DNA of 62,837 nt from Macrostomum lignano. Taxonomy: Eukaryota. The DNA lies in NCBI GenBank assembly GCA_002269645.1, contig NIVC01004048.1, positions 1 to 62,837 of the forward strand. Direction: 5' to 3'. The notes below the pieces were generated by a model. The model searched no databases, was not told where the DNA came from, and saw only the letters and a list, made by a program, of their open reading frames with translations. A program made the position numbers and the translations under genes. Shown here piece after piece: positions 1,213 to 61,519 of this stretch (position 1 is its first letter; every line of letters begins with the position of its first letter).

Positions 1213-1672
1213 CAACGTGGTCCCGAGACCCCGTATTAAACGTTAAAGGACTCTATTACCGGAATTAACCTTCGAACTTCAACCAAAATTTTACAAGGTT
1301 GACAAACGTAAAAAGATGGAGCAAAAACGTTCTGCCGCACACGCCAATCTTGTATACCAGTCACAAGCAGACAGCGGAGCGAAGCCCGTTCATTACAAGA
1401 GAAAAGAACAACAAACCGTGGCTGCCATAAAGCAGCAGACAGCGGCTCCACTCTCTCCCAGCCGCCCTTCCTCATATTTCACTGCACCAGCTGACCAGCC
1501 GAGTAATTATATTACGAAGTAGCACCAGGGCTAGTGGCAAGACAGCTCAAGGAGATCTATATACTCGTAGATTCTAACTCTGGAGCGGAAGCTGATTGAT
1601 TGGCCGAAGCCTGCTCTTTCAACTTGATTGAGCTGGCCCCAGATATTAAGTTGACAACAAAGATATTAAGTT

Positions 1673-2149
1673 GCCAGAGGGCGGCGCTGTTCCAGGCGGT
1701 GATCGAGACCGTCCTGTTATACAACGCCGAGACCTGGACGCTGACAGACTCGCTCGAGGCTCAAGTCGACGCGGCGCACGCTGGCCTGCTGCGCGCCGCC
1801 TTCAAGATCGGCAACGAGCGAGTCACCAACACGGCGCTCTATCATCGCGCCGGCCTGGCCCGTCCTAGCGATCTGCTGCGCCGTCGGCGACTCCAGCTGG
1901 CAGGCCACGTCATCCGCGCCGAGGCCTTCTGTCCGGAGCCGGTGCAGGAGGTGCTGCTACTTACGTTGCAGGCACCCTACCGGCGGGGACAGGCGAAGAC
2001 TCGGCGCTACGTCGACTGTCTGCTGGCTGACGCCGGCGCCCCGGACTCTGCCGGCGGTGCGGCTTTTGTTCGCGCCCAAGCTTTGAAGCGCGCCATCTGA
2101 CGCCGCTTTTGTGAACTGGCAGCGTACTCTGTTGTTGTTGTTGTTGTTG
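1673..2149 (+). mobile_element. 5'-truncated RTE-like non-LTR retrotransposon (3' end of RT ORF, 3' UTR and (GTT)n tail)
   Basis: Encodes QRAALFQAVIETVLLYNAETWTLT..., typical of the C-terminal part of RTE-clade RTs. Closely similar to 32587-33097. Ends in (GTT)n. GTTGACAACAAAGA is repeated at 1650-1663 and 2146-2159 (TSD overlapping the tail). Confidence 0.88.
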
Positions 2150-4778: not shown

Positions 4779-7409
4779 TCAGTCCTGCTCCGCATCCTCC
4801 TTCTGGCCGATGGCCCGGTCGGCGAAGCGCAGCCGCAGCACGAAGTTGCCGCCGCGCTCCTGCTGGCCGAGGCCGACCAGCTCGCGGTTGTTGGCCAGCA
4901 CCAGCGCCTCTGTGGACAGCATCGCGTTCGGCCACTGCGCCATGCCGCCCGAGGACTTGTCGGTCGCTCTGGCGTTGCTGAACCGCAGCGTTGAAGTTGG
5001 CAGCGGGCATTTGGCCTCGTCGAACACTCGGCGAAGCTGGTGCTCCTGGTAATAAAAGTGCGCGAAAAATACTGTTAGTAGGCTGAATTGCGTTTTCTTT
5101 CGATAAATGAAAAAATACAAAAAAACGGATTCGAAGTAATTACTATCAGATTGGAGACAACATGTATGATGAATGGATGCGGCATTTTTTAATAGCCATA
5201 GTTAGTTTGCGTCATGCATTTTGAGTCATAAGCAGTCTGGGTGAGTCATAAAGTCACCTGAATCTGAAAACTCACCTGAATCCCGGGCGGGCAGTTCCAA
5301 TAGTAGAGGGTGCGGAACGGTGGCGCCGGCTTGTTGCTGGCCGCCTGCCTCGGAGTGGTGAACCGATTGTTGGCGCAGTCCGAGTAGTCAACGAACCCGG
5401 GACTCTTGTCTGGCAGGGCCCGGTCCAGCGCCACTCCGTGCGGCGCCGAGTCCTTGGTCAGCCTGGCCAGCGGCGTCGGTGACACCCGAAGGCAGCTACC
5501 GAACATCCTGGCGCCGTCCAGGCAGCTGCCGACCCGGCAGGCTGAGGCAACGTCGCCAACTTCAACGTAGGCGCCAATCAGCGGACCGGGGGGAGGCGGC
5601 GGCTGTCCGGGTGGCAGCTGCTGGCCCGGCGGCCGGCTCAGCAGGCAGATGCCGATCACGTTGCCGTACAGGCAGATGAGGTTGAACAGCCGGTCGCAGG
5701 TGAACACGCCGGAGTCCAGGCCGGAGAGCAGCAGCACGGGAGTGACGCGGTGGGGCGGCCCGGGCTCCTGCTGAATGCTCGGGTCGCGGGTGAAGTCGAA
5801 GGCGTCCGGGGTGTTGCGGACTATCGTGAGCTCGGGGGGCAGCGCGAAGTCCACCTGGTGTTGCGGGGGTCGGGATGGTTTTACTTCAGCAGTAATTAAT
5901 CTGGACGGGTGAGAATGGATATCTTAGGTGAGAAAAGACATCCTAGATAGGTGAGAATTGACATCCTAGACAGGGGAGAATAGACATTCTATACAGGTGA
6001 GAATAGACATCCTAGACAGGTGAGAATAGACATCATAAACGCGGGTGAGAATATATAACATAGACAGGTGAGAATCGAAATTCTATACAGGTGAGAAGAC
6101 ACCCTAAACAGGTGAGAATAGACATCCCAGACAGGTGAGAATGGATAGCATAGACAGGTGAGACTGGACATCCTAGAGTTTAGAATAGACATCCCAGACA
6201 GGTGAGAATAGACATCCTAGACAGTTTAGAATGGGCATTTAAGACAGGTGAGAATAGACATTAAAAATAAGTGGGAAGGAATCCCAAATGCCAAGACCCA
6301 GGGGCTGAAATAACTGCCTCACCTTAACAGTACAGCAGCCGTCAAAGAAGTCCAGCCCATTTAGCCTGGCCTTGGCGGTCACCGCCTGTTCAATGTGAGC
6401 GAATTCAACCATAGCATGCAGCTGGCAACTCGGGCCCTTGCGAAACATCACAGCCCGGCACACCTGGCCAAACCGTGAGCAGGCGGCGTGCAGCATCTCC
6501 ATGCTGACTGGCAGGCTGGGCTCGGCCCTGTAGAACACCAGCAGCAGCACCCGGTTGGGAGCCGGGAAGCCGTCGCCGCGGTGCATGATGCGGATAATGG
6601 ACGACTCGACTACGTGGATGCCGCCAAGAGCGCCCGACCTGCGGGCGGGACGAGAGGGAAATATTGATGAGGGAAGGGGAAGAAATCACTTCCATGGGAA
6701 GACTGGGAGAGGAAGACGGGAAGAGGAAGACGGGGAAAGGGAGACTGGAAGAGGGAGATGGGAAGAGGGAGAGGGAAACGGGGAGAGGGAGACGGGGAGA
6801 GGGAGACGGGGAGAGGGAGACTGGAAGAGGGAGATGGGAGACGGGGAGAGGGAGACTGGAAGAGGGAGATGGGAGACGGGGAGAGGGAGACTGGAAGAGG
6901 GAGATGGGAGACGGGGAGAGGGAGACTGGAAGAGGGAGATGGGAAGAGGGAGACTGGAAGAGGGAGAAAAGGACGAGATGGAGCCCAAACACACAAGGTA
7001 AGCACCGCAGGCCCTCCAAAGCAGCCGGTGCCAGAGCTCACTTTGCCAGCTCGAAAGTCCTAGCAACGGATCTCTGCTCCTGGAATTCAACGAGGGCCCG
7101 CCGTTTATGCGGCATCGTCCAGATTCGGCTGATTCGGCCGATGCGGCCGAACGCCTCGGACAGGTCGGCCTCGGAGACGTTCGCGGGAAGGTCGCGGGCC
7201 ATCACCACCAAGGAGGACCGCTCTGAGCCCGGCCGCTGGTGCTGGGCCCGGAACTCCTCAGAGCGGCCCGCCGGGTCCGGCCGGTAGTGGTCACCGTACG
7301 GCACTCGGGCAGCGGGCCGGCCTCCGCGGCCGCCGCGACCTCTTGGGCCGCCTCTGGGCGGGCCGCCGCGAGACCCGCCGCCTCTGAAAGGAGCGCCGCG
7401 ACTTGCCAT
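4779..7409 (-). CDS. HNRNPL: hnRNP L / hnRNP LL-like RNA-binding protein with 4 RRMs and an RGG-rich N-terminus; 4 coding exons
   Basis: Exons 7409-7042 (alternative ATG at 7463), 6638-6323, 5854-5276 and 5045-4779, all GT-AG and phase-compatible (AA|G TCG; AAG|GTG; CAG|GAG). Motifs: NRVLLLVF, HAMVEF, LNGLDFFDGCCTVK|VDFA (cf. LNGADIYSGCCTLKIEYA), CDRLFNLICLYGNV, NNRFTTPRQAASN, FVLRLRFA. Confidence 0.9.
5905..6262. repeat. 23-bp intronic minisatellite (GTGAGAATAGACATCCTAGACAG) in hnRNP L intron 2
   Basis: About 15 degenerate units visible. Confidence 0.88.
6700..6975. repeat. Purine-rich low-complexity repeat (GGGAGA-based) in hnRNP L intron 1; pyrimidine-rich on the sense strand
   Basis: Directly visible; produces the spurious GE/PS-rich ORFs. 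Confidence 0.88.
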
Positions 7410-8127
7410 GGTTGAAGGCGAGTGCGCGGGGGTGGGCCAGTTAGACAATGGCAACTCTGTCATGGCTAAGGTGGCTGCAAACCCTCCCTGATGCTTCAGA
7501 TAGCTGGTGACTTCTCAGAAGTTACTAATAAGACTTCTTAACAAGCTTCAAAAAATAAAAGAAGCACGAACAAAAGAACCATTAAAGTTGTTCATTAGAA
7601 TACTTTATCTTAATCCGCATTGCAATCAGAGGCAAATTTACCTCCAGTCTACTAAAATAGTAGTAGTTGAGTAGGGTCCGCATACACACGAATGAGCCAT
7701 ATCAAAGGTTTTGGCAGCGAGAGCATAACGCAGTGAGCAACAACTGTCATTCTGTTAATTACGGCACCAAAATAATTAATTAAAGGCCACGAACATGATT
7801 AATTAAAAGCCTCAGTTAATGACAACCGGAAAACAAATACAGATAGCAATAGATTATATAATTCTTATACAATAGATTATTGATACTAATATGACCGTCA
7901 AACGTTATTCTCGACTAGATCCCGTGTTGCATTGATCTTAAAACTATAAAGGACCATTAAAAAGCAATGCGATAACAATTAATTCTACTTTAACCTTTTT
8001 GTTTCTAATGAACTCTTTCACTTTCTTTAGACAATAAAACTGGAAATCAACGGCATCTTTGGCAGCAAAAAAAGTACAAAGTCCCTGTAGAATGAGAAGG
8101 TTTAAAAAGGGTTCTATGAATTGACAT

Positions 8128-9177
8128 TCAACTGTCCTTCTTGGCCAGCGGCCGCTTTGCCTTGCGACCGCCGCTAGCCGTGGTGGTGGCGGCAGCCGCA
8201 GCGGCCGCAGGGTAGGCGGTGCGAATGTAGAACCGGACAATCAGGCAGGCCACGGCCGAGCTGACGCCCATCAGGTTCGGCAGCTGCAAACGGCAGGATG
8301 GGGCTGCTGGTTTAATTTAGAAAATTTAACTTACCTGGCTACCAATCTGCCTGTGGTAAAAAGTCGTCAAAAATTCAGTTCGAGCAGGCAAACAGACAGA
8401 CAGGGAAATAGACAGACAGAAGACAGACAGACAAACGACAGGACAGACAGACAGAGAGACAGACAGGCAAATAGACAAGCAGACAGACAGACAAGCAGAC
8501 AGGCAAACAGACAGACAGACAGACAAGCAGACAGGCAAACAGAGAAGCAGATAAGCAGACAGACAGACAGACAGGCAAACAGACAGGCAAACAGACAGGA
8601 AACTCACCACCACATTGAAGTCGCCAATGGCCTGTCCATAGAGACTCCACAGGCCGCTGCAGAGGGCGCCGGCCAGCAGGATCGGCAGATGGGTGCCGCC
8701 GGCGTCGCGGCTGGCCAGCATGCGGCCGATGTCCAGCAGCGGCAGCAGCATGAAGACGGTGTTCACCAGGCTGCAGCTGGCACCGAGATGGCGCACGAAC
8801 TCATCGTGGCTAGACAGCCAGTACAGGTGATAATACAGGGCTGAGAAATAGGCCAGCAGGGCCGTGAACTTGTAGCTGAAGCTGGTCTGCGGAAAATTAT
8901 TCAGTTAAATATTGACCACTATACTTGAAGTAGGCATGGCGGACTGTATGGCGAAATGACAGTATCGACGTTCAGTGTGCAGGTGGCTCCTCAGGTTGGG
9001 GCAACAGTGGGAACTCAGCCAGCCAAGTGTAGACGGCAAGTAAATAATAATAATTGATTACACCTGCCCGAATGGCCAGATGTGCAGCCGACAGCTCAGC
9101 CGCAGCTATTGCGCGGCACATCTGAAGGCGGCGTACGGCTGTTCAGTCCAAGGACTGGGGGTCGCCACATACACACA

Positions 9178-20518: not shown

Positions 20519-23500
20519 TCACCTATCACCGTTTCCTTTGATACAACGTGAGTTCAGCGGCATCGATTCTTTCACGTCTTCGTCGGCTTCGTCGGGGTGT
20601 CGCTGTGCATCGAACTGATCAGCGGTCTGCATCGTCTGCAGAGCCATGGAGCTGCCATCGTTGCGGCCCCGCCGGGAGCCACCAGCGGAGCAGCACAGCA
20701 GCTTCTGCAGCCGGTTGCCCAGCGGCGTGACTCTGAAGGCGCTCCGGAATTCGCTGTTGATGGCGAAGTAGGCCAGTGCGGAGGCCGCCATGCCGCTCTT
20801 GGCCATCAGCAGCGCTAGGGTGGACAGCACCCGGTACAGTCGGCCTTCGAGATGCAACAAACCGGCGAAGCTGCTGACTGCCATAGCAGAATAGGGCGTC
20901 CAGCACAGTAAGAAGGCGCCTGGAGTGATGTAGGGATTGGCGAATACTGGAGTTGGTGCAGTGCGACTTCTTGAGGTGCTGGATGAATCCTTGTACATAT
21001 GCATTAAAGTTTCCGAGATCGGAAATGGCCAACCCCCAACGGAGAGCCCAGTGGTCAAGACTTAGCATTGCTCATTTTCTTAAACTTAAGGTGCAGTCAG
21101 TCAGCGCTCTCGGCTAACTTTGAAATCTACTCCAACGCCCGTCGCCGAGAGGCTTTCGAGCTTTTCCAATTGCTTTTCCAGGCGCAATAAGTGCAGGGAT
21201 CTGCAGTTTTTGCACCTGCTGAACTTTGCCCTGACTCTGATTGACTTCTATTCGGACCAGACTCTCTCATCTTCGACCGCACACGCCTCCTGAGCGGCGG
21301 AAACCTTACGTTCTGAGGAGCGGCCCGTCGGCCGTCCAGGGGCCGGCGGAATGGGTGCTGGCCCCTTCCAGCTGCGTCTTTTGGCATGGACTCTCACCTG
21401 GGCCGTCTCTCAGAGCGCCCTGCAGAAGGCCAAACAGAGCCCCAGCTTAGAGTGTCTGCATGAGTGTCTCTTCCAATAGCGTCTTCCGGAGCGCATCGCA
21501 GAAGCCTCAGAGTCACCCCCTCAGCCTCAGCTATCCCTCTCGTGACACCGCCCTAAAATATACTCGTAGAAAAGTAAAACCCGATTTCGCCCAGACAGCG
21601 TACTAAAATTAGCAAACATTTTTTCTCTACAGCTGGCTTCACGGCTCTCACGAAGAAACTCGCAGCGCGATCGAAGCAAGCACGCCACGGAAACCATAAG
21701 ACGGCGTTGCTTTATAACTCGCCTGCACTTGAAAACACGTTATAAATGCAAACCTTTTTTTGTACGCCTTATTTTGCCAGCCATATTGATCGATTGAAGC
21801 TCGAAAGCTATACAAGCGTTCCGTTGTTCATGCCACGACAGAGCTTGGAATTCGACCCATGAGAGATGGTGTGGAAGAGAGAACGATAATTTAAGGAACA
21901 CCACTGCACTAGGCTATAGACGGGGTTGTGAGGCATAAATTCCGCCAAGTTTAGCATCAACTAAAGCGAAAGGTTTTACTTTAGGCAAAAACCAGGACGT
22001 GGCGTCCCATGCGGCCACACAATCCATGGGGATCGATATGTCTACCCAACCGATGCAATGCTCGGCATCGACAACTTAAGAATCTGAATGCTACAAACAA
22101 TCTCTTAGACTGTTTTAGCTCTCCTAGAGAGCCAAAATGTAATTTTAGAATCAAGTCTACTTCGTGCACAGACTCTGTATGCAATTCTTAACTTATCAAG
22201 AAGCAACTTGGTTTTAATAGGGGATACAACATCTTTTAAGACCATCATCGTTTGCAGCTTTGGTGCAATCCTGAAGCGAGACTAAGGCATATGGCGCATA
22301 GGCCTCTCGAAGCCATGATTTCAAATTCAAATTGTTCAATAGAATTGAGCACAAAGATACGTCGCAAACATAACGTCTTTCTCTTCTTTCACAACAATAG
22401 CGGCGTCTTCCAGTCTTTAAAAAGTTCCAGCCCATCCTCCTGGCAGCACTATCCTGCCCAGTTTGAGGAGCATTGCTGCCCCCCCCCCAGTCAAATACAA
22501 GTTGCAGCAAGTCAAGCAAAACGTAGCCACCTGCAGTAATTTCACTTATAATAATTACAGGCATTAACTGCCGTGGATGCGCGCTCAGTGTCTTGCCAAT
22601 GTCATCGACACGGCGCTTTGCGTTTTTATAAGTTCGCTCGGGCAGAGCGCGAAGTAGGATTCAAGAGCGCTCATCTGTTGTTCATCTGCCTGGAATACCA
22701 AGCATTGTAATAACTGCTCCAAGCCTAGTCTCCGTGTCCGTATCCGACATTACACGAGCTAGCTCGTATTTTACGGCATCGTTTTAGCTGACTGTTTCAG
22801 TCAGGTATGTCCGCTATGAAGAAACAATGGAAAAGGCAGGCGCTACATTAGATGGCGAACTAACGGTATTTTAGGTGCTGTTGGGTGCTGTTGGTGTTGT
22901 TGGGTGCTGTTGGGTGCTGTTGGTGTTGTTGGGTGCTGTTGGTGTTGTTGGGTGCTGTTGGGTGTTGTTGGGTGCTGTTGGGAGCTGTTGGTGTTGTTGG
23001 GTGCTGTTGGGTGCTGTTGGTGTTGTTGGGTGCTGTTGGGTGCTGTTGGGTGCTGTTGGTGTTGTTGGGTGCTGTTGGTGTTGTTGGGTGCTGTTGGGTG
23101 TTGTTGGGTGCTGTTGGGTGCTGTTGGTGTTGTTGGGTGCTGTTGGGTGCTGTTGGTGTTGTTGGGTGCTGTTGAGTGCTGTTGGGTGCTGTTGGGTGCT
23201 GTTGGGTGCTGTTGGGTGCTGTTGGGTGCTGTTGGGTGCTGTTGGTTCTGTTGAGTGATGTGGTGCTTTTGGGTGCTGTTATGTGCTGTTGGGTGCTGTT
23301 GGGTGTTGTTGGGTGCTGTTGGTGTTGTTGGGTGCTGTTGTTGGGTGTTGTTGGGTGCTGTTGGGTGCTGTTGGGTGCTGTTGGGTGCTGTTGGTGTTGT
23401 TGGTTTTGTTGGGTGCTGTTGGGTGCTGTTGGTGTTGTTGGGTGCTGTTGGGTGCTGTTGGGGCTGTTGGGTGCTGTTGGGGCTGTTGGGTGCTGTTGGG

Positions 23501-26500
23501 TGCTGTTGGGTGCTGTTGGGTGCTGTTGGGGCTGTTGGGTGCTGTTGGTTCTGTTGAGTGATGTGGTGCTTTTGGGTGCTGTTATGTGCTGTTGGGTGCT
23601 GTTATGTGCTTTTGGGTGCTGTTATGTGCTGTTGGGTGCTGTTATGTGCTGTTGGGTGCTGTTATGTGCTGTTGGGTGCTGTTATGTGCTGTTGGGTGCT
23701 GTTATGTGCTGTTGGGTGCTGTTATGTGCTGTTGGGTGCTGTTATGTGCTTCTAGGGTGCTTTTGGATGCTAATTGATTTAATAAGCCAAGTTTACATAG
23801 CATTGAAACGAGTATATTCGCCCAATAGATGTACTAGAAGGACTTTTAAAGCACGATTGAGATACCAAGTAAAGAAGCTCCTGTCTGCTGGTTGGTGCTT
23901 TATTATTTATATGTAAGAAGTCCCCGTTAATTGTTCTCTGTAAATTAGGCTGGAAATTGTCTGTGAAACTCTGAAGAGCTGCCTGAATTTCTCCCTGAAT
24001 TTCTCACTAACCAGAATTCCCTTTGTTCTACTGCTCTTAGCGTTGGGTTTGCCTACCTTAAACTGAAAGAGAAAGCTGCTCAGAGCTCTCCATACTTCCA
24101 GGAGTATATCCTCAGGGCAGCTCACCTGATTTCCCACTTTGAATGCAAGATATTTTGCTTGATAACATGACTTGTTTCTTGCGCAAACGAATCCAAAATT
24201 ATGGGTGTCTTTCTCTTAATTTTTAATAAATTATTTTTATATTCTAATTTCAAAATTTTATCCAACTAATTTATATCCACAATTTTTGTTATTCACAGTT
24301 AATGCAGGCTTATTGAGTTACTATTTTTTATTGCTTATTTTTTAAATTTCCTACCCGCCAGGCGAAATGTCCTACCCGCCAGGCGAAATGTCCTACCCGC
24401 CAGGTGAAATTTCCTACCCGCCAGGCGAAATGTCCTACCCGCCAGGCGAAATGTCCTACCCGCCAGGCAAAATGTCCTACCCGCCAGGCGAAATGTCCTA
24501 CCCGCCAGGTGAAATGTCCTACCCGCCAGGCGAAATGTCCTACCCGCCAGGTGAAATGTCCTACCCGCCAGGCGAAATGTCCTACCCGCCAGGCGAAATG
24601 TCCTACCCGCCAGGCGAAATGTCCTACCCGCCAGGCGAAATGTCCTACCCGCCAGGTGAAATGTCCTTCCCGCCAGGCGAAATGTCCTACCCGCCAGGTG
24701 AAATGTCCTTCCCGCCAGGCGAAATGTCCTACCCGCCAGGTGAAATGTCCTACCCGCCAGGCGAAATGTCCTACCCGCCAGGTGAAATGTCCTACCCGCC
24801 AGGCGAAATGTCCTACCCGCCAGGTGAAATGTCCTACCCGCCAGGCGAAATGTCCTACCCGCCAGGTGAAATGTCCTTCCCGCCAGGCGAAATGTCCTAC
24901 CCGCCAGGTGAAATGTCCTACCCGCCAGGCGAAATGTCCTACCCGCCAGGTGAAATGTCCTACCCGCCAGGCGAAATGTCCTACCCGCCAGGTGAAATGT
25001 CCTACCCGCCAGGCGAAATGTCCTACCCGCCAGGCGAAATGTCCTACCCGCCAGGCAAAATGTCCTACCCGCCAGGCGAAATGTCCTACCCGCCAGGTGA
25101 AATGTCCTACCCGCCAGGCGAAATGTCCTACCCGCCAGGTGAAATGTCCTACCCGCCAGGCGAAATGTCCTACCCGCCAAAGCGCATTTGTTCTTGGGCA
25201 AATTATCTTTGGTAATTCTGCATAATGAGCTCCAGTTTTCATTACGTCAAGCAACAATATTAGGGCAGTTCGAGTAAATTTTTAAATCCGATCGCGTCTA
25301 AAAACCGACTTTGCTGAAATTTTTAGAAGAATCCATTAACCCTGTCTTTCCTTTTGTTTCCTTTCATGACGAAACTGAAATGTGTGGGCGATGGCAGCCA
25401 CCCACAGTCAGCTGCACGCAAACTAGGTAAAGTCATCAAGCCGTCATTTATAATTTTTTGAGTCTAACATCTCTCTGTCACGGTCGTCAAGGAAGTTGAG
25501 ATGAAATTGAAATTTCTGTAGCGATCGCTGTGCAGCAAGGGAGCCGCTGGACAGTCGGCACGCAGCCATCCGGCTCCTGTAATTCTACACTTGATGATGC
25601 TCATGCTCCTGAAATTGTGCTTTAATTACAGAGCCATTTGCTTGCTTTTTTGTTTGAAGGCAGTTCTGCGTTAATAGCTACTCGAATCGCGTCAGCAGTG
25701 TTTGGCCTTTCAGTCTTCTTGACTGCGACAAGAATAAATCATTTTTTTGTGAGACATCCTAGCAAAGAGAAAGTAACTGTGGATACGTAGTTGTAAACTG
25801 TGATTTCTAAAATAGAGCGAGAGTGAGAGTGAGAGTGAGAGTGAGGGTGAGAGTAAGAGTGAGAGTGAGAATGAGAGTGAAAGTGAGGGTGAGAGTGAAA
25901 GTTAAAGTGAGAGTGGGAGTGAGAGTGGGAGTGGGAGTGGGAGTGAGAGTGAGAGTGGGAGTGAAAGTGGGAGTGGGAGTGAGAGTGAGTGTGGGCAAGG
26001 GTGACCCTAACACAGCCGGTCGGGAGGCCAGAGCCAGAGGCTGGCAGGCATCACAGCTCACCGATGATGGCGAGCACGTGAATGGCGAACTTCCTGTCCC
26101 TCCTGGCCTGGCTGGAGCTCGCGGCCAGCAGCCCGGAGCTGCGGTGCCGTCGGATCTGCAATGAATTTCCGGATGGTCATCTGTTGACTTCGGCTTGCTG
26201 ACAGTTTTAAAGTACATCTCTGACAGTCAGCCCAGTGCAGCCAAAGCGGATTAGCATTTAACGCAGAATCCATGCTTGTAGCAGCTTTGGCTTGTATCTA
26301 GTCCGGAAATTAATTGTTTCACCCCACGGAAAGTGACTCGTGCTTTGCCAGTGCAAAGCATTTACAAAGGCAATTTTCGTATTCACTAAGTCACTGTTTC
26401 AAATTATTGCAAAACTCCGAATAACAAATTTTTGTATGGTGAATCTGGAATCCTAACTTCAACTGACCATCGTTCTCATCCACTCAACGGAATTAAAATT

Positions 26501-29500
26501 TTTATCAGGTCCATCCTGACACAGCATCCATCATCTAGATCTCACCTGACACAGCTTCCTGCATCTCGATCTCATCTGACACAGCATCCGGCATCTCGAT
26601 CTCACGATCTCACCTGACACAGCATCCGGCATCTCGATCTCACGATCTCATCTGAGACAGCATCCGGCATCTAAATCTCACCTGACACAGCATCCGGCAT
26701 CTCGATCTCACCTGACACTGCATCCTGCATTCAGATCTCTGACACAGCACCCTGCATCTCGATCTCACCTGACACTGCATCCTGCATCCAGATCTCATTT
26801 GACACAGCATCCTGCATCTCGATCTCATCTGACACTGCATACGTCATCCAGATCTCACCTGACACAGCATCCTGCATCTCGATCTCATCTGACACAGCAT
26901 CCGACATCTTGATCTCACCTGACACAGCATCCTGCATCCAGATCTCACCTGACACAGCATCCTGCATCTCGATTTCACCTGACACAGCATCCGGCATCCA
27001 GATCTCACCTGACACAGCATCCTGCATCTCGATCTCATCTGACACAGCATCCGACATCTTGATCTCACCTGATACAGCATCCTGCATCCAGATCTCATCT
27101 GACACAGCATCCGGCATCTCGATCTCACCTGACACAGCTGCTGGTCTTTTTCTGAGGCAATCTTATCTCTTTTTAAAGAAACTCAGCCTAACTAATGCGC
27201 TGTCTATCCCAGATTTGCCATCTTGAGTTGAGAACTAACAGATTTAAAAGCGATAAAAATCAATTTTCAGAACTTATTTGAAACGTCCCTAAAATGCAAC
27301 GCAGACCAGGCACAGCTAAAAGCTGACGAGGTTCGAGGTTCCCATGATGAATCCTTAGCACTATTAAAGCAAGTAATTCTACCAGGCAGCTAGAATAGGC
27401 GAATAGATAAGCCAGAGGCTTATCTGTCACGGACTGTTCCTATATTAATGCCATCAATAATATATTTATTCACTCGGCGCGTCACCGGCAAAAGCCCTAC
27501 TCAAATTCCGCCTAGTAGAAAAGGAGCTCTGCTAGCTGTGAATGCTCCTGGGTCGGGCATCAGCTGGTGACTGAAGTTATTTAATCCTAAGAGAATTAGA
27601 CTTCGGAGTAAGACCATTGACTCTCTACTAAGGTATTACAATAAATCCTTGGAAATACTGACTTTGCCTTGCATGCTTTCAGCTCAAATGCTCAGAGCCA
27701 ATCTTTTACTAATGAGTAAGTACACTGTCTAAGTATCTTAATCCCATTATTATGCAATCCTGGACTAGCTATAGGGATCACTAGCATCAAAGCGTCAAGA
27801 CCTCAAGAACGACTAGAGGCTGTCAATCATACTAACTCTCACATTAAACCCACAACTGACATCCTCCACTGACATCCTCCACTGACATCCTCCACTGAAA
27901 TCCTCCACTGACATCCTCCACTGACATCCTCCACAGACATCCTCTACAGAAATCCTCTACAGACATCCTCTACAGACATCCTCTACAGACATCCTCCACT
28001 GACATCCTCTACAGACATCCGCAATTGCCATCCTCCACTGATATACTCCACTTGTTGTGTTCTAATTAACACAGAGAGTTTCTTTGATTGAAGCTTTCTC
28101 GGCGAGACACAAATCTCGCTCACAATATATTTATAGAGATGAAACTCCTGCTTGCACGTTGCATTGCCAAATCGATACGCAATCACCTACTCATTCTAGT
28201 CTGAGTACAGTATACGCCCACGCATTCAATAAGGTCAATAGTTAATTGTCAGTGGTCAGTTCATTGCGCAAGCATTGTCAATCACAACACCACTGACATC
28301 CTCACTGACATCCTCTACAGACATCCGCAATTGCCATCCTCCACTGATATACTCCACTGACATCCTCCGCTGACATCCTCCACTGACATCCGCAATTGCC
28401 ATCCTCCACTGATATACTCCACTGACATCCTCCGCTGACATCCTCCACTGACATCCGCAATTGCCATCCTCCACTGATATACTCCACTGACATCCTCCAC
28501 TGACATCCTCCACTGACATCCTCCACTGACATCCTCCACTGACATCCTCCACTGCCATCCTCCACAGACATCCTCTACAGACATCCGCAATTGCCATCCT
28601 CCACTGATATACTCCACTGACATCCTCCACTGACATCCTCCACTGACATCCTCCACTGACATCCTCCACTGACATCCTCCACTGACATCCTCCACTGATA
28701 TCCTCCACTAACATTCATAACTGACATTCCCCACTGACGTCCTCCAATGATATCCTCCATTCCCCATTGACATCCTCCAATGACATCCTCCATTCCCCAC
28801 TGACATCCTCCACTGACATCCTCCATTCCCCAATGGCATCCTCCAATGAAATTCTCCACCCTCCACCCACACCGGACAAAGCACAGCAGAACCTGTAAGC
28901 TTCACTACCGCCTTCAAGCACCTGCCCAGCCACGTACGTGCATGAAAATCGCCGCATAGGAGGCCGCGATGACCGCCAGAGGCAGCAGAAACTCCCCAAC
29001 CAGCAGGCTGACCAAGTAGGCCCGGTCGCCCGGCCGGCCGCTCTCCCAGTCCAGGTCGCAGGCGGCCACGTGGCTGACCCGACGGACCCCGGCGACGCCG
29101 AACATCGGTGGCAAACTCCAGGCGGCGCTGATGGTCGCGCAGGCTACGACTAGGGCGAAGGCGTGCCAGTTGTCGAACGGCCGGTTCCGGGTGACCATTC
29201 GGCACCGCAGAGCTGACAGCCCGGCCAGCAGGTTGATGTTAAACAGGCCGATGGCACAGGTGCTGAACACGTACCTGGAGATCGAAACTTGTTGATGGCA
29301 TCTGCAGCCGCTTCTTTATCCCCCCCAGCTTTGATTTAAGCAAGATTAAGAACAAGGACAAGGAGATTAATTTGATTGCGTTCACGATTGAATGAGGCGC
29401 GATTAGTTATAAAGCAAAGCTGCTTAAAGTCGGGATTAAGTCGAAGCTGCCTTTGATCGCGGGGTTGCAAGAAAAAATGGATCAGGTCGCTTGCGAGTCT

Positions 29501-30422
29501 TTGTCTTAGTGCGACCCCACGTGTCCTTTGTTACAAAGAAACTGCTAGCTTAACAAGAGCGCTTTAACAGTCTGGAAACCACTTACAGGTGGATTACATG
29601 GTTGGTTGAAGAATAGTATCATATGTTGCATTTTCCTAGCACAATTAGACTCGATGTTTTATGTAGTTCTGCTTTTACGGACTAGCTGCTGTTGTGAATT
29701 ATAGAACATGACTGACGCACATCAAAAACATACACAGTCCTTGACTTGTGCTCACTGGCTGTGTCGAGCTCCATTGCTTCTGCTCTCTGCGAGTACTTAG
29801 CTTTGATAGCGGTGAATTTAAACTGAAGGATGCCATCATGAGAATCTCATGAGAGCGGGGGGTCAAGAGAGTAATTCAGTACTTAATGCATCTGACTGTC
29901 GCTTATTTGGGCCAAACTTGAACTTATTCATCTGTGTGGCCAGCCCCCAAGGCACAAATTGTGTACATTCCCCACGATGAGAAAGTAAAAAGTGCTGTTG
30001 TTGGCTGTGGGTCGACTATATCGATCGCTTGCTGATTTGTGGCAGTGCCCAAGGAAACCCTCAAACTAACTACCTCGTAATTGTCTGACAGGGAAAGGTC
30101 GTGGTTTGCCAGCTGCAGCTCACCAGTAGCACCAACCGACGTGGAAGGCCCATTCGCCAGCCAGCCAGGCGGAGGTGAGATTCAGCGACGCGGCCACCAG
30201 CACGCAGATGCAGTTGCCTAGGAAACCGGCGCACAGTACCAGCATGGATGGATTGCGCAGCGACTGCGAGGCCAAGATGTTGTACGCCGACAGAGCGTTG
30301 GAGGCGAAGCTTACGACGAACACGACGGTAAACCAGATGGCGTTGGCGCAGTGACCCCAGCTGATGTTGGTTGAAAAGTCAGTGTAGTTACTAGGAGGAG
30401 TTGCTCCGTTTGCCGAACTCAT
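20519..30422 (-). CDS. Opsin-family GPCR (retinal-binding Lys retained), highly divergent; subfamily unresolved (xenopsin- or tetraopsin-like); 4 coding exons
   Basis: Exons 30422-30124 (upstream in-frame ATG at 30584), 29274-28938, 26155-26062 and 20919-20519, with phase-compatible GT-AG junctions (TG|G, CAC|ATC, G|GC). Seven hydrophobic segments, LRNP before TM2, disulfide cysteines, [30 protein letters not shown] (K296 equivalent), NSEFR. Confidence 0.9.
22873..23750. repeat. 9-10-bp GT-rich tandem repeat (GGGTGCTGTT / ATGTGCTGTT) in opsin intron 3
   Basis: Directly visible; source of the [10 protein letters not shown] ORFs. Confidence 0.95.
24347..25178. repeat. Homogeneous 21-bp minisatellite (GAAATGTCCTACCCGCCAGG[C/T]), ~39 copies
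   Basis: Directly visible; the 3n unit keeps several frames open. Confidence 0.97.
25815..25992. repeat. Hexamer microsatellite (GTGAGA/GTGGGA)n
   Basis: Directly visible. Confidence 0.92.
26505..27137. repeat. 30-bp minisatellite (GATCTCACCTGACACAGCATCCTGCATCTC) in opsin intron 2
   Basis: About 20 units visible. Confidence 0.95.
27855..28860. repeat. 12-bp minisatellite (ACTGACATCCTCC-like) in two blocks, ~27855-28050 and ~28290-28860
   Basis: Directly visible, with the recurring variant CATCCGCAATTGCCATCCTCCACTGATATACTCC. Confidence 0.92.
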
Positions 30423-31631
30423 TGCGCCAGCTTCTCTGTGATGGGTCTCAAGATGACCAGCATGACAATAGCTGCAGATCAGGCGATGGCCCAGAAGAAG
30501 AGGATATTCAAAGTCAAGACCAATCCGGCAGTCTTTAGAAACACTGCCATCTGATTGGCTGGCCGATGCAGTTAGGATGGACATTTTCCATAATATGCCT
30601 TTCCCTCCGGGGCCTTGAAGTTTTTAAACTCATCCCAAGGCCCGAGATGGGTCTTTATCGAGATCGGCAAAAGGGAAGTAAGAAATTTGAAATGGAAGAA
30701 AAGAGGAGAAAACTCTGATATGGGAGATTGGCACACCTGTTAAGAAATCCTAGCTGCTTGGGGCACTAATACCAACAACTTTTCTTCCGTTTTGAGGTAA
30801 GGCACCCTTGGGTCCTGCTTTCCCAGCCTTGTGTTTCCATGCAGCAAATAGGCAACTCTGATCGAGAATAACTTTTATTTATTCTTGCCATTCCTTCAAT
30901 CCGACTTATTTCTATGTGTACTTTGCAGCCTGAACTTTTCAGTGGTCATTCTGTCCAATATTATAACCCTCAAAAAATAGCCAAAAACGTGTCGAAGGAA
31001 AGTTATACTACGTCGTTGTGTAAGTGCAGCTCTGTTGGCTAACAGTAACATGTCTTAATTATGTGTACGTGGGTTGCCTGTAACCCATCTAATCCACATG
31101 CATTTCCTGCTAAAAAAATTGTAGTCAGCAGACTGCTTAATTTGATGGCACTTGATTTCGAAGCAATTTCAAGTCCTGGAATATTCGATTTAATAAACTA
31201 TTTTACATGCGAATATGAGCACATGTTCAAAAATTTCAAGTTGTGAAAATTTATTTGATGAGTCAATAAATCCAGAAAAAAGCTTCATGTACAGACAGAT
31301 AAAGTGCATTTAAATATTTATTTTTTAATTGGTTTATCGGAGATTAAGAAATTTGGGTTCGACCCGCTATCGTTGAATGAATCTGTATCGTGTAGTTACA
31401 AGCAAAGGTCTACTTGGTTACCAATTGTACGTATATACTGTACGTTACGTTCACTGTAAAACAAAATCTGTACCAAACCCTTGCGTGTACATATGCATGT
31501 ATGTACATATCCAGGCGCGTCGCCACCGGGGGGGGGGCATGTCCCATCCCCAGTAAAAGCTATGGGGGGACATGCCAATGCTTCGTCCCCCCACCCCAAC
31601 TACATATGTAATTGTGACCCGTTATGGTAAT

Positions 31632-34600
31632 TGATGTAGAGACTATTGATTGACTGAGATGTCTATGGTGTAAGCTTTTATGCTATCGTTCAGTGCGCGG
31701 CATCGCTTTTATTTCAATAAAATATACATATGCAACAAAATATAAAACATGGCGTCCCATAGCAGCGATTAACTGCCAAACGCTTTCGTGACAGCTAGCT
31801 CGTACTTTGCGACCATGATGTCGCCAACTAAAGCCCCACAGTAGTCACCAACCAAGGCACCACCATCGGAACCAACAAAAGCTCCTCCACCGGAGAGGCT
31901 AACGAGCCAAGATGAGTCAGCGCGGAGAATTTCACTCCCGGGTCTACAGATCCCTCGCTTAGACCTATCCACAGACACGCTGGATGAGTTCGACGCATGG
32001 CGTGCAACATTTGAGGCCTACTTCGAGGCTATTAGAACAGCTGATCTCCGCCATAATGGCGTTGTACTGTGCTACGAGAGCAGCTGTGAAGACGCCGGAC
32101 GGCCTGTCGGACTCCTTCGAGACATCCTCCGGGGTGCACCAGGGGGACACTCTAGCGCCGTTCCTGTTCGTCCTGGTGCTTGACTGGGCGCTATGAACTG
32201 CTCTTCCTACCGACGAAGACGGCTTCCTACTGCGGCGACGCGTGGGTCGACGTCAACCGGAGAAACGGCTCAGCATGCTTGGCTACGCCGATGACCTCGC
32301 CCTGCTGTCCTCGACCGTAGAGGGTGCCCAGCGTCAGCTGGACAAGCTGGTTAGCGCTGCAGCGAGCGTCGGCCTGGTGGTCAACATGAAGAAGACCGTT
32401 GTGCTCTGCGTGCCGGCGACATCGAGGCCGCAATTTTCTGCCAAGGCGCTGGCGGGCAGGTAACGGAGCTTCCGCGCTGTCAGCAGTTCGTCTACCTCAG
32501 CGGTCTGGTACCTGACGTCCGCGAAGATCTGCGGCGTCGCTGCGGGCTTGCCTGGGCTGCCTTTCACTCTGTGAGGGCGGTCCTGCAGTCCGAGGCCCTA
32601 CCTGACCGCCAGAGGGCGGCGCTGTTCCAGGCGGTGGTCGAGACCGTTCTGTTGTACAACGCCGAGACCTGGACGCTGACGGATTCGCTCGAACAGCAAG
32701 TCAACGCGGCGCACGCTGGCCTGCTGCGCGCCGCCTTTAAGATCAGCGACGAGCAGATCACTATCGCGGCACTCAATCGCCGCGCCGGCCTGGCCCGTCC
32801 AAGTGAACTGCTGCGACTTCGGCGACTCCAGCTGGCAGGCCACATCATCCGCGCCGAGTCCTACTGCCCGCAGCCGGTGCAGGAGGTGCTGCTGCTAACG
32901 TTGCAGGCACCCTACCGGCGCGGCCAGGCCCGAACTCGGCGTTTCATCGACTGCCTGCTGGCCGACGCTGGCGCCCCGGACTCTGCCGGCGGTGCGGCCT
33001 TTGTTCGCGCCCAGGCTCTGAAGCGTGCCCTGTGACGCTGCTTTTTTCCACCTGACAGCGTACTTTGCTGTTGTTGTTGTTGTTGTTTTTGTTGTTGTTC
33101 GAGGTTATGGACATTAACAACCTCGCAAGTGACAGCCGGGCTATTGCAGGTCAGAAAAAAGCCAGTCGCAGAGCTTGCATGCTCAGCGAATTCTCAGCAG
33201 CCACGTTCTGCAAATACCAGAACCTTGCCCTGTCCGAAAAAAGAGCTGAAAGACCCCGAAAAAGTCATCAAAGCGCTTCGAGAGCATTTGACGGGCCAAG
33301 TCAATATAATAGTAGAAAGAAACCGCTTCTGGAGACGACAGCAAAAGGACGGAGAAACATACAACGAATATTTTCTTGAGCTACGAAATTTAATGAGAAC
33401 ATGCCAATCCTGTGAACACTCAGACGACCTTCTGAGAGATAAAATCTTACTCGGAGTTAACAACTCAGAAACAGTGAAGAAGCTACTGGCTGAGCCGACC
33501 CTCACTCTCGCAGGAGCCCTACAAGTATGCAGAGCCGAGGAGGCGAGGATATTGGATCCTAAGCTTGAAATGGTACGCAACAGCTACAAATCCGCACATG
33601 CAAGACTTGATTAGTGTGATAATGGCCGGATTTCCTCAAAATAAACAGGATTTACTCGAGCACCTAAGACCATACTGGCAAGTACGTGAAAAGCTTTCAG
33701 TGGAAAATGGTGTTATACATTTGTACTATATGGATGCAGATGCGTGATACCGAAATCACTGCGCCGAGAAATGCTCTCACTGCTGCACTCCAGTCATCAA
33801 GGTACCGCCAAGACAAAGCAAAGAGCTCGCATGATCCTTTTCTGGCCGAATATGGATAAAGAAATTGAGGACACCGTCAACAATTGTAAATCATGTCAGA
33901 AAGTTTTGCCATCACAAGTACGAGAACCAATTAAGATTAGAGATCTGCCAACGCGATGTTTTCAAGAAGTCCATGGCGATATTTCTGCGAGTATGGTGGA
34001 AAAAAGTATCCCGTGATCGTGGATGGTTACTCAGGCTGGCTTAGTATCTTAATATCTTAGTATCTTAGAAACAACCATGCACCAACACACAAATTGTTCA
34101 ACGCTTGCAGGGAACTGTTTAGCCAAACATCGGTACCCGAAAAATTTTGGTGTGACTCAGGACCACTGCAATTCAAACCGAAGTATTCCTAAACTTTCTA
34201 AAACGATGGGGAGTTGAGGCCTGTTTCTCCTCTCCGCACTATCATTAGAGTAGCGGCAAGGCGGAAGCAGCAGTCAAAACAGCCAAGAAGATCATGCGTA
34301 GATCCTGGGACAAGAACTGGTACGTGACATAGACAAGGACGAGTTGGTCGAGGGGATATTGCAATATCGGAACACGCCTATGTACGACGGGCGATCGAGT
34401 CCCCGACATTCTCGTCTTTGGTCATCCAGCACGGGACTCGCTGCCTGCTCACCGCAGATATTTTACTCCCGAATGGCACAAGACTGCAGTCGAGCTGGAA
34501 GCCAAAGCAGCGGAAGTGCATGAAAAAGTTGTTCACAGCTACAACAAGCGATTCCTGTCAAGGATGCCTAACAACATCGCTTGCCAAGAACAAGCGATTC

Positions 34601-47852: not shown

Positions 47853-49523
47853 TTACAGTTCCGCGGTCAGTAGGGCGCCATCTCCTTGCATCTCGTCCGT
47901 TTCCCCATCCATCACGATCCTGACTCTGTCTGAAGCAGCGGCCGCTTGAGTTCCATTGCTGGTCTCCTTGAATTCGAAGACTCTGGAGTCGGTGTCTCCG
48001 AGTCTCGCCGTGTATCCGATCAGCCGGATCTGCTCCAGCTCGCCTCGCTCTATTTCCGCTCTTGCAGCCACTTGTCCCGTTGCTAATGCGCCAGTTGCAC
48101 TCTTACCGCTGCCCAGTTGGGGCGAAGCGGCCGGACATCCGGTTATGACCGCCCTGCCGGTCAGCTTTAAACGCGCCGCCGCGGCCATCCGCCGACGCGA
48201 ATGACAGCAATATGCGGCTATCAGGGCTCCGCCTAGAAAAGCGCCTGCGGTTAGCAGCGTGGTGCCGATGACGCCCTGCCGATCCATGCCCGGACCGTTG
48301 ACCTCGACAGTTTTACCTGTCTTTTTTGTCAAAATATTTTCGGTGTTGTCTCGTTGATTCGGCTGGATATGAGCTGTTGCATTCTTGCTGTTTGTAGGTG
48401 TAGTTGAAGCAATAGTCGATGGACTTGGCGATATTTGTTTTTGAGATTGACAGACATCAGCACAAACATTGTCCTGACTGTCATTGACTTGACCACACCG
48501 TTGTTCAGCCCGAGCAGTGTATTTAATGACAGCATCGCCAACATCTGCGCAGAACTCATCAGCGTAATCCATTGCTAGTTGATCAGCCACGAGATTGGCA
48601 ATTGAAATGCCGTTCAGTTGCAAGTGGCCGCTGGGCCATACGGCGCACAGTGCCACTTGCTGCTTTAAGACAAGTCGCTGCACTACTGCCTCGACTGCCT
48701 CGCCAGGCGATGGCTGAACGCGCAGGCTAGTGATGTTAGCGAGACTGATCAATGGTTGCCATAGAAATGCTAGACTGGAATCAATATCAAGGTAGCGCAA
48801 TGAGGCGCCCACGCTGCAAAATATGACATCGGCATTGCCTCGTAGCGTTGCTGGCGTTTCGGTTGGTAGTTCTAGCCGCACCAGTGCCGGCAGTTCGGAC
48901 GCTCCACCAAGAGACTTGAGACGCGGGCTGCCACTAATTCTTAGCTCGGTTAGTCCGACCAGCTCATCCAACGCGCCCGTTTGAATGCAGACAAGGTCAA
49001 AGTTGTCAGTCAGGCGTAGGCTGACAAGCTGGTTTGCTAAGCCCGAATCCGAAGACTCCATCCACGAAGGAGTGCTAAAGAGGCCGCGCTGCAGGCAGGT
49101 GGCATTGCTCTCTGCCAGCTCCAGCCTGTTCAGCTGGCGCAGCCGGTGCAACGCCGTCAAGTCCAGACTGTCTCGCTGGCGCAGGCGGCGCAATGACAGC
49201 GCGTCGACTTTGTCTGAGCTTTCGACTTGAAAGGCGTCAGGCTGCAGATGGTTGATGGCCTCCTCCTTTGTCAGCGGCGGGCTGAGTGTCCACACCGGCC
49301 GGCCGTGCCAGGCGGTGGCGCCACTCACCGGGATGAAGATTTTGCGCTGAACAGTGTACCCAGCGGCTGCGTAGGCTTCTACGGCGCTTGATGTTCGACA
49401 GTCCAGGATGCTTGCGTTCTCTCGTCCGCGTTGGTAGAAGCCGCAGCCAAACGCGTCTGCGAATGGCTGAGCAATCGCTAACACGAGCAGCTGCGAAGCA
49501 ATGATAATGCCTAATTTCGGCAT
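47853..49523 (-). CDS. Type I transmembrane leucine-rich-repeat protein, single coding exon
   Basis: Uninterrupted 570-aa ORF. Signal peptide from Met at 49523 (MPKLGIIIASQLLVLAIAQP; upstream ATG at 49565). LRR motifs (LRQLNRLELAES, LVSLRLTDNFDL.CI..GALDELVGLTELRISGS), S/T-rich stalk, TM segment VIGTTLLTAGAFLGGALIAAYCC. Acceptor TTTCAG at 49607 implies an upstream 5' UTR exon. Confidence 0.85.
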   Translation of the reverse strand: MPKLGIIIASQLLVLAIAQPFADAFGCGFYQRGRENASILDCRTSSAVEAYAAAGYTVQRKIFIPVSGATAWHGRPVWTLSPPLTKEEAINHLQPDAFQVESSDKVDALSLRRLRQRDSLDLTALHRLRQLNRLELAESNATCLQRGLFSTPSWMESSDSGLANQLVSLRLTDNFDLVCIQTGALDELVGLTELRISGSPRLKSLGGASELPALVRLELPTETPATLRGNADVIFCSVGASLRYLDIDSSLAFLWQPLISLANITSLRVQPSPGEAVEAVVQRLVLKQQVALCAVWPSGHLQLNGISIANLVADQLAMDYADEFCADVGDAVIKYTARAEQRCGQVNDSQDNVCADVCQSQKQISPSPSTIASTTPTNSKNATAHIQPNQRDNTENILTKKTGKTVEVNGPGMDRQGVIGTTLLTAGAFLGGALIAAYCCHSRRRMAAAARLKLTGRAVITGCPAASPQLGSGKSATGALATGQVAARAEIERGELEQIRLIGYTARLGDTDSRVFEFKETSNGTQAAAASDRVRIVMDGETDEMQGDGALLTAEL

Positions 49524-61443: not shown

Positions 61444-61519
61444 GTTAGGGACACCAGTAAACTGGTGAACTGGTACTAAATTTACAGCTGTTTTATCATT
61501 TTACTGCTAATCAGAGAAG

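Follow-up and report, generated by a model that had tools for sequence, protein, structure and literature searches.

The stretch of Macrostomum lignano DNA analysed here, a window of 62,837 nt covering contig NIVC01004048.1, carries an opsin locus on its minus strand, with a coding sequence (CDS) that runs from an ATG at 30422 to a TGA at 20519. When assembled from the DNA, the four exons add up to 1131 nt, or 376 codons followed by TGA, with no internal stop, and all introns are flanked by GT-AG and have phases 2, 0, and 1 for introns 1, 2, and 3 (Table 1). A sequence-only reading of this window had proposed a gene of four exons spliced in frame and without stops; its coordinates proved to be the exact limits of the CDS, and every string it quoted is present in the DNA. 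Exon 3 was found through a 134-aa, 93%-identical fragment (P0001), recovered by a HMMER search, which continues from exon 2. Exon 1 ends in phase 2 within the codon of W112, with intron 1 splitting TG/G in the string C-Y-W-Y (here and below a slash marks an intron), and the N-terminus that it encodes carries the N-glycosylation sequons NYT and NIS. Such sequons are typical of opsin N-termini. No second opsin was found in the window.

The protein is a class-A G-protein-coupled receptor (GPCR), and opsins are what it matches best in both sequence and structure. Pfam 7tm_1 matches the 376-aa model with E=1.4e-21, and the best match outside M. lignano has 32% identity (E=4e-18); the best named matches are an amphioxus c-opsin, Owenia xenopsin3, opsins of Lingula, Mya, and Tubulanus, and a TMT opsin. 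The best sequence matches in the PDB, as found with phmmer, are likewise opsins, with a lysine of the protein aligned to K296 (residue numbering throughout is that of bovine rhodopsin, except where positions in the protein itself are named). An AlphaFold2 model, with a predicted local distance difference test score (pLDDT) of 84.8 and a predicted template modelling score (pTM) of 0.81, has seven helices, helix 8, and a beta-hairpin in extracellular loop 2 (ECL2), the last formed by residues 163-166 and 171-174 of the protein, which correspond to bovine 178-181 and 186-189. In a Foldseek comparison with the PDB, the best 16 matches are all opsins, squid rhodopsin coming first (E=2.4e-13). The pocket is mostly xenopsin-like (G121, L122, I125, W167, C187, W191, F212, F261, W265, Y268, A295, and K296), the C110-C187 pair is present, and other marks of opsins are the A-K-S motif, an xCxxDW hairpin in ECL2, FxxCWxPY, and NxxFR in helix 8.

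The sequence-only reading had left the opsin family open and had named a comparison of introns with xenopsins as one way to identify it, which turned out to be decisive. Xenopsins are ciliary-type opsins of protostomes (Ramirez 2016, Vocking 2017, Rawlinson 2019). Vocking et al. 2017 (PMC5648526) reported that every xenopsin has a pair of introns at fixed positions and phases; the first lies near a c-opsin intron without coinciding with it, and the second is unique. Exon-intron structures were rebuilt from the genomic loci of six relatives, and among these Lingula XP_013397676, Mya XP_052814072, and Owenia xenopsin3 have two introns in common with each other: one in phase 0, six residues past Tyr223 (GNIFHK/F, GGLFNR/L, and TFLFIK/V), and one in phase 1, in a Gly six residues before W265 (LMI/G/CFLASW, LMI/G/AFFISW, and VML/G/AYLVSW). 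Introns 2 and 3 of the Macrostomum gene (AAIFMH/I and AII/G/AFLLCW) occupy exactly these positions and phases, and the exon that they enclose is similarly small, at 94 nt compared with 103 to 112 nt in the three xenopsins. The amphioxus c-opsin lacks the pair, its introns being at Y223+9 and behind NSQ instead, and so do two Tubulanus opsins, where the positions are entirely different. Because introns 2 and 3 match a xenopsin-specific pair that the c-opsin and the nemertean opsins lack, the Macrostomum protein very probably belongs to the xenopsin lineage, as a very divergent, fast-evolving member. Intron 1, in phase 2 within W112, was matched in no opsin examined and appears to be lineage-specific. 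A 273-aa ENA protein (P0008) is probably an unannotated xenopsin: it is opsin-like, has LRY and E181, and degenerates exactly past Y223+6, as if the first xenopsin intron had been read through.

Trees add to this picture with some caution. A neighbor-joining (NJ) tree of the 107 best matches, built without flatworm xenopsins, joined the gene to cnidarian GPCRs that lack K296, and it was discarded as a case of long-branch attraction. This attraction to K296-less cnidarian receptors means that distance trees alone cannot place the protein. With labelled sequences from the supplement of Rawlinson et al. 2019, NJ bootstrapping (a distance method; 200 replicates) put the protein inside the xenopsins, on a long branch and beside flatworm clade B in 137/200 replicates (68%), while the phmmer ranking mixed c-opsins with xenopsins. 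A word-indexed protein search returned nothing with the single query and five xenopsins with a profile; it also missed a 97%-identical paralogue, so its silence is uninformative. The possibility that this is a non-opsin class-A GPCR with a coincidental lysine in transmembrane helix 7 (TM7), which the sequence-only reading had allowed for, can draw on the discarded tree and on the 22/200 replicates (11%) of the labelled tree in which the protein joined non-opsins. Against these stand the xenopsin-specific intron pair, the best sequence and fold matches, which are opsins, and the A-K-S, xCxxDW, FxxCWxPY, and NxxFR motifs, which together make a non-opsin origin extremely improbable.

The resemblance to xenopsins extends over both introns, K296, the C110/C187 pair, Y113, the W167/W191/L122 pocket, the xWTPY of TM6, the AKS of TM7, the NxxFR of helix 8, and a lophotrochozoan host. 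The differences are equally clear: position 181 is E or D in 21/21 labelled xenopsins and V in the Macrostomum protein, which also lacks DRY, D83, NPxxY, NxQ, and the distal VxPx, has D188 in place of S188, an extra phase-2 intron in W112, and three extra residues in ECL3, and shares at most ~29% identity with any xenopsin. NxQ at 310-312 and a C-terminal VxPx are hallmarks of clade-A xenopsins. Clade B is characterised by the lack of both (Rawlinson et al. 2019, PMC6805122) and is so far known only from polyclads. We compared the protein with a clade-B set consisting of Prostheceraeus vittatus B1 and B2, Stylochus, Echinoplana, and Prosthiostomum (DAB27257-9 and others). In common with this set it has the lysine, the absence of NxQ and VxPx, the loss of P303, a flatworm host, the otherwise rare E211 followed by F212, L207, L208, and A272, and an aliphatic residue at 292; with P. 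vittatus B2 it further shares L134-R135. It departs from clade B in having S302-A303 where clade B has D302-S303, and in its hairpin, which is two residues longer. It also departs at 181, where an acid has been retained in 5/5 clade-B sequences (four with D, one with E), which makes the complete loss of the counterion specific to the Macrostomum protein. An affinity to the flatworm clade-B xenopsins is an evenly balanced proposition.

A second copy of the gene allows selection to be assessed. The closest database proteins are from M. lignano, a free-living flatworm: UniRef A0A1I8J5A0 (P0152) is identical to exon 2 of the window and to exon 3 read through past its donor, and PAA90994.1 (BOX15_Mlig015728g1; P0151, 251 aa) is 97% identical, starts at M126, and joins exons 2-3-4 as modelled here. 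The locus of PAA90994.1 (L001, on NIVC01000099.1) is collinear with the window over >23 kb, with four exons and all six splice sites intact. Exon identity between the copies is 97.3-100% (97.3% for exon 1, 100% for exon 3), and the CDSs differ at 22/1131 nt with zero indels. Twelve of these differences are synonymous and 10 non-synonymous, giving synonymous and non-synonymous divergences of dS=0.043 and dN=0.012 and a dN/dS of 0.27 (binomial P=0.003 against a neutral expectation of ~3 non-synonymous to 1 synonymous), a test made on two near-identical copies that are either duplicates arising from the neopolyploidy reported for this species or uncollapsed haplotypes. The core of seven transmembrane helices has four replacements to nine silent changes, and 5/10 replacements lie within the final 55 residues. 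Exon 1, which the deposited models omit, has 5 synonymous and 3 non-synonymous changes, and this excess of silent changes indicates that it is coding.

By comparison, the unique non-coding DNA around the exons has 3.8% substitutions, close to dS, and ~96 gap openings per 7.2 kb (~1 per 75 nt), a rate at which ~15 indels would be expected in 1131 nt where 0 are observed. The dN/dS of 0.27, far from the value near 1 that the sequence-only reading had associated with decay, and the lack of indels in the CDS point to purifying selection, and we are highly confident that this is a real gene under selection. A decaying pseudogene or an artefact of gene prediction would fit the lack of transcript data and of orthologues elsewhere, and database models that are either truncated (starting at M126) or read through the exon-3 donor. 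This explanation is highly improbable in view of the intact reading frames and six splice sites in both copies, the dN/dS with its P value, the absence of coding indels, and the pattern of changes in exon 1.

Three alignments were used to assign residues: phmmer (HMMER) against PDB opsin chains, where the best matches are SWS1 and rod opsins; MAFFT with bovine rhodopsin and 107 homologues; and L-INS-i with the labelled opsin set. All three give N83, A90, N94, C110, Y113, and L134-R135-C136; V178, V181, A186, C187, D188, D190, E211, and Y223; D247, W265, P267, Y268, L292, and K296; and S302-A303-L-A-Y306 and N310-S-E312. K284 of the protein is bovine K296 in the HMMER and MAFFT alignments. The gap-free hand alignment of the sequence-only reading, with K296 kept, Tyr at 113, Val at 181, Asn at 94, Leu at 292, D83 changed to Asn, (D/E)RY to LRC, and NPxxY to SALAY, is therefore right in every particular, having been reproduced by three independent alignments.

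No acid is present at 94, 113, 181, or 292, and none of the alignments places one at a standard counterion site. The raw sequence has zero D or E in TM2, in the extracellular (N-terminal) half of TM3, in the first ECL2 strand, and in TM7 before the lysine, so that no realignment can put an acid at such a site. Close to the pocket, acids occur at just three sites: D188 and D190 lie on the second ECL2 strand, and E211 at the ionone end in TM5. Of the homologues listed from the MAFFT set, 43/45 have E or D at 181, the exceptions being one without the lysine and one truncated in TM7. Two opsin-like eukaryotic GPCRs in ENA/Logan (P0036 and P0062) have Ser at both 113 and 181; in P0062, Leu replaces K296, and P0036 is truncated in TM7. 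These may represent another lineage that lost its counterions.

The position of the counterion governs visible versus ultraviolet (UV) absorption, dark stability, and activation, and the solutions known to us are few: E113, E181, E94, and, in corals, chloride with E292. The sequence-only reading had listed five possible modes of action (a UV pigment, an anion counterion, use of D188/D190, a photoisomerase, and a light-independent sensor), which are ranked here by likelihood. On the strength of its sequence, the Macrostomum protein probably binds retinal through K284 (bovine 296). Its ECL2 departs from the xenopsin consensus on the Schiff-base side by Y178V, E181V, S186A, and S188D and has gained R179, R180, and H183; residue 188 is Ser in 14/16 other xenopsins and Asp here. 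In squid rhodopsin, whose ECL2 numbering is bovine minus 1, the E181-type counterion Glu180 (bovine 181) is 5 A away, Asn185 (bovine 186) serves as a hydrogen-bond partner of the Schiff base in LUMI, and the side chain of Ser187 (bovine 188) contacts the C13 methyl of retinal (PMC4449009). Since its side chain would be directed toward retinal C13, beside the Schiff base, D188 is the likeliest candidate for a replacement counterion.

Following this analogy, the ancestral xenopsin counterion E181 would have given way to V, its partners Y178 and S186 would have been lost with it (to V and A, respectively), and residue 188 on the neighbouring strand, Ser in nearly all xenopsins, would have turned into Asp. 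An Asp at 188 could place a carboxylate within a few angstroms of C13-C15=N, and loss of E181 coupled to gain of D188 would amount to displacement of the counterion across the hairpin. We know of no characterised opsin that uses position 188 as a counterion site. D188 as the displaced counterion is our preferred reading, tentatively held and with less than an even chance. Alternatively, D188 or D190 could be salt-bridged to R179/R180, which would leave the proton unstabilised and yield a neutral, UV-absorbing Schiff base; a UV pigment of this kind is somewhat unlikely. Of comparable, rather low likelihood is a further independent counterion displacement, this time within xenopsins, whether the counterion be D188 or an anion held by the Arg and His residues of ECL2.

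The anion itself deserves separate consideration, as a pigment in which an environmental chloride near the Schiff base would stabilise its proton, held at a site made from R179, R180, and H183 of ECL2. Chloride binding in L/M cone opsins uses H181 and K184, and the Macrostomum ECL2 reads R-R-V-S-H around 181. The Macrostomum protein has neither an acid at 94, 113, or 181 nor E(D)RY, a combination that, to our knowledge, just one characterised group of animal opsins shares, the coral ASO-II opsins. ASO-II opsins nevertheless form pigment and signal (Sakai et al. 2025, eLife, PMC12401545), showing that such a protein is workable. Their chloride binding depends on E292, however, and whereas E or D occupies 292 in all five Acropora/Nematostella ASO-II sequences as well as in P0110 and P0131, the Macrostomum protein has Leu. 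ASO-II opsins also keep NPxxY and D83 and form a separate cnidarian clade in the NJ tree. Membership of the Macrostomum protein in ASO-II was rejected on account of L292, the flatworm host, the separate clade, and the xenopsin introns; ASO-II is a functional analogue, by convergence rather than kinship. Being unrelated to ASO-II by tree, taxon, and gene structure, and having D188 and D190 next to basic residues that they may simply pair with, the Macrostomum protein is very unlikely to be an anion-counterion pigment.

A more radical departure would be a former opsin that no longer uses retinal and acts as a chemo-, thermo-, or mechanosensory GPCR or as a scaffold. Light-independent roles are on record for some opsins, and Y178V, E181V, S186A, G114V, and M117T all fall at pocket sites that are invariant or nearly so in xenopsins, on a very long branch. 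Lineages that abandon retinal usually lose the lysine, however. Pseudopsins, for example, lack it (PMC10097855). In the Macrostomum protein K296 is kept under purifying selection together with A295, W265, Y268, F261, G121, W167, W191, and F212, and a light-independent role is accordingly quite unlikely.

Whether the protein signals is a separate matter. The protein has lost D83, the (D/E)RY acid, N302-P303, and NxQ, the tripeptide at 310-312 being N-S-E, and a distal-tail VxPx was not found in it, where the sole V.P. match is VTPL, directly past helix 8. The statement in the sequence-only reading that G-protein motifs are lacking is borne out for D83, (D/E)RY, and NPxxY, all of which are altered, but goes too far, in that R135, Y223, Y306, the acid at 6.30, helix 8 (NSEFR), and the CC palmitoylation pair are kept. 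Canonical Gi/o coupling, such as Maritigrella xenopsin has been shown to have, is made less likely by D83N, L134, S302-A303, and N-S-E, while the retained residues suggest that the conformational switch is still used. As far as sequence can tell, signalling has probably been modified rather than abolished.

The same set of losses could instead mark a non-signalling photoisomerase or retinal-handling opsin, which would bind all-trans or 11-cis retinal and regenerate the chromophore for other pigments. RGR, retinochrome, and peropsin resemble the Macrostomum protein in having degenerate G-protein motifs with the lysine kept, but belong to another opsin group (Group 4); the protein did not group with peropsin-labelled sequences in the NJ tree, and the Tubulanus peropsin-like genes have different introns. 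RGR and retinochrome rely on E181 as photoisomerases, which is absent here, and a pure isomerase would have no need of R135, Y223, Y306, D6.30, helix 8, and the CC pair. A photoisomerase role has been suggested for clade B, which keeps the lysine and lacks NxQ and VxPx (Rawlinson et al. 2019, PMC6805122), and the Macrostomum protein, missing these motifs along with D83, the (D/E)RY acid, and N302-P303, groups with clade B in 68% of the NJ replicates. Yet M. lignano has no recognised clade-A xenopsin for such an isomerase to serve (PMC6805122, PMC10097855), and coral ASO-II opsins without E(D)RY still signal (PMC12401545). On balance we consider a photoisomerase unlikely, though less so than an anion-counterion pigment or a light-independent protein.

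Taken as a whole, the evidence is best explained by a functional M. lignano gene for a fast-evolving xenopsin-lineage opsin, probably related to clade B, an explanation we favour with modest confidence. Several observations weigh against it. Raw phmmer scores do not rank clade B first, and of 22 columns that discriminate clades A and B, 14 agree with neither clade, 5 (among them the rare E211) agree with B, and 3 with A; the grouping with clade B joins two long branches and may reflect long-branch attraction. The geometry proposed for D188 is taken from other opsin structures. The joint loss of Y178, E181, and S186, combined with G114V, M117T, and F/Y118C, could mean that retinal is no longer held in the pocket, and signalling GPCRs rarely lose N302 and P303. 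Instead of duplicates, the two copies could be haplotypes that were not collapsed. Support for expression is limited to the GenBank entry for the sister copy: its locus tag is of transcript style, and its model begins at M126 and connects exons 2-4 as here. The protein cluster of that copy has no Logan or ENA transcript-derived member. Finally, an exhaustive HMMER search of 1.84 billion representatives found no orthologue at 35-90% identity, so that conservation of the odd residues is judged from two near-identical copies only.

Macrostomum lignano is a transgenic model amenable to RNA interference. Surveys of transcriptomes and genomes had found no xenopsin or c-opsin-like gene in macrostomids, in which putative ciliary photoreceptors have been described (Rawlinson et al. 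2019, PMC6805122), and only r-opsins and retinochromes were found in platyhelminth genomes (De Vivo et al. 2023, PMC10097855). In public databases the sequence exists solely as a hypothetical protein or a generic GPCR-domain protein, and a literature search returned no paper that mentions Mlig015728 and none that pairs Macrostomum with such an opsin. The gene fills a gap in the distribution of opsins and, if the interpretation is true, may encode the missing pigment of the putative ciliary photoreceptors of macrostomids. Opsins lacking both counterion and E(D)RY are known from corals, and the phenomenon is thus not categorically new; what is new here is a xenopsin-lineage opsin that has lost every known counterion. 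A bilaterian opsin without any known counterion, kept by selection, is a second, independent natural experiment. It is also a tractable one, as its nearest relatives are ordinary xenopsins with E181 and S188 and the protein is small, with no obvious obstacles to expression. For optogenetics, bistable or UV opsins that couple in unusual ways are attractive tools.

Several further features of the locus and of the rest of the window were recorded (Table 1). An in-frame upstream ATG would add 54 residues without opsin-like features to the N-terminus, and translation more plausibly starts at the ATG at 30422, which has the glycosylation sequons downstream of it. Inside intron 3, a decoy resembles the start of TM6 with perfect spacing from E6.30 to W6.48; it was ruled out by the lack of a GT donor and is a chance resemblance. 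Introns 2 and 3 are packed with minisatellite arrays of up to ~90 copies, with units of 13 and 30 nt in intron 2 and of 6, 10, and 21 nt in intron 3, and these arrays give rise to long spurious open reading frames (ORFs) on both strands. Intron lengths differ strongly between the copies, intron 2 being 2782 nt here and 5242 nt in L001.

Table 1. Positions of the opsin gene, its diagnostic codons, and other features in the 62,837-nt window.
Feature	Positions	Strand	Description
Exon 1	30124..30422	-	299 nt; N-terminus, TM1, TM2, TM3 start
Exon 1 sites	N83 30215-30213; N94 30182-30180; C110 30131-30129	-	
Intron 1	29275..30123	-	849 nt, GT-AG, phase 2
Exon 2	28938..29274	-	337 nt; TM3 to TM5
Exon 2 TM3 sites	Y113 29273-29271; L134-R135-C136 29210-29202	-	
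Exon 2 ECL2 sites	V181 29078-29076; C187 29060-29058; D188 29057-29055; D190 29051-29049	-	
Exon 2 TM5 sites	E211 28994-28992; Y223 28958-28956	-	
Intron 2	26156..28937	-	2782 nt, GT-AG, phase 0; six residues past Tyr223
Exon 3	26062..26155	-	94 nt; intracellular loop 3 and TM6 start
Exon 3 site	D at 6.30 (bovine 247) 26098-26096	-	
Intron 3	20920..26061	-	5142 nt, GT-AG, phase 1; in Gly six residues before W265
Exon 4	20519..20919	-	401 nt; TM6 (FLLCWTPY), TM7, helix 8, CC palmitoylation pair, tail, TGA
Exon 4 TM6/TM7 sites	W265 20902-20900; L292 20812-20810; K296 20800-20798	-	
Exon 4 3' sites	S302-A303 20782-20777; Y306 20770-20768; N-S-E (310-312) 20758-20750	-	
Extension from upstream ATG (30584)	30423-30584	-	54 residues, in frame
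TM6-start decoy	21575-21640	-	inside intron 3
Minisatellite arrays	22874-23771, 24344-25179, 25814-25993, 26515-27138, 27855-28052, 28290-28858		introns 2 and 3
Repeat-family ORF	1600-2100	+	similar to the next entry
Repeat-family ORF	32571-33035	+	like the preceding entry
RRM ORFs	5246-7463	-	three ORFs
MtN3/SWEET ORF	8326-8796	-	sugar-transporter domain
LRR_8 ORF	47853-49565	-	single 570-aa ORF
ORF group, one with a weak DUF4495 match	56420-61479	+	several ORFs

Elsewhere in the window, the two repeat-family ORFs are alike (...AALFQAV[IV]ETVLLYNAETWTLTDSLE...QAPYRRGQA[KR]TRR...) and look like remnants of one retrotransposon family; Pfam gave no match for the one nearer the start of the window. 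The three minus-strand ORFs with RRM domains (RRM_5 E=1.7e-12, RRM_1 ~1e-6) are probably exons of a gene for a PTB/hnRNP-L-like RNA-binding protein. In the MtN3/SWEET ORF, the sugar-transporter domain (E=4e-8) is followed by a low-complexity CLSV repeat. The 570-aa ORF may encode an intronless LRR membrane protein: its N-terminus is signal-like, it matches LRR_8 weakly, and it has a transmembrane segment at its C-terminal end. The last group of ORFs, one of which has a weak DUF4495 match, probably belongs to a multi-exon gene, and a 33-nt-type tandem repeat interrupts it at ~59.2-59.9 kb.

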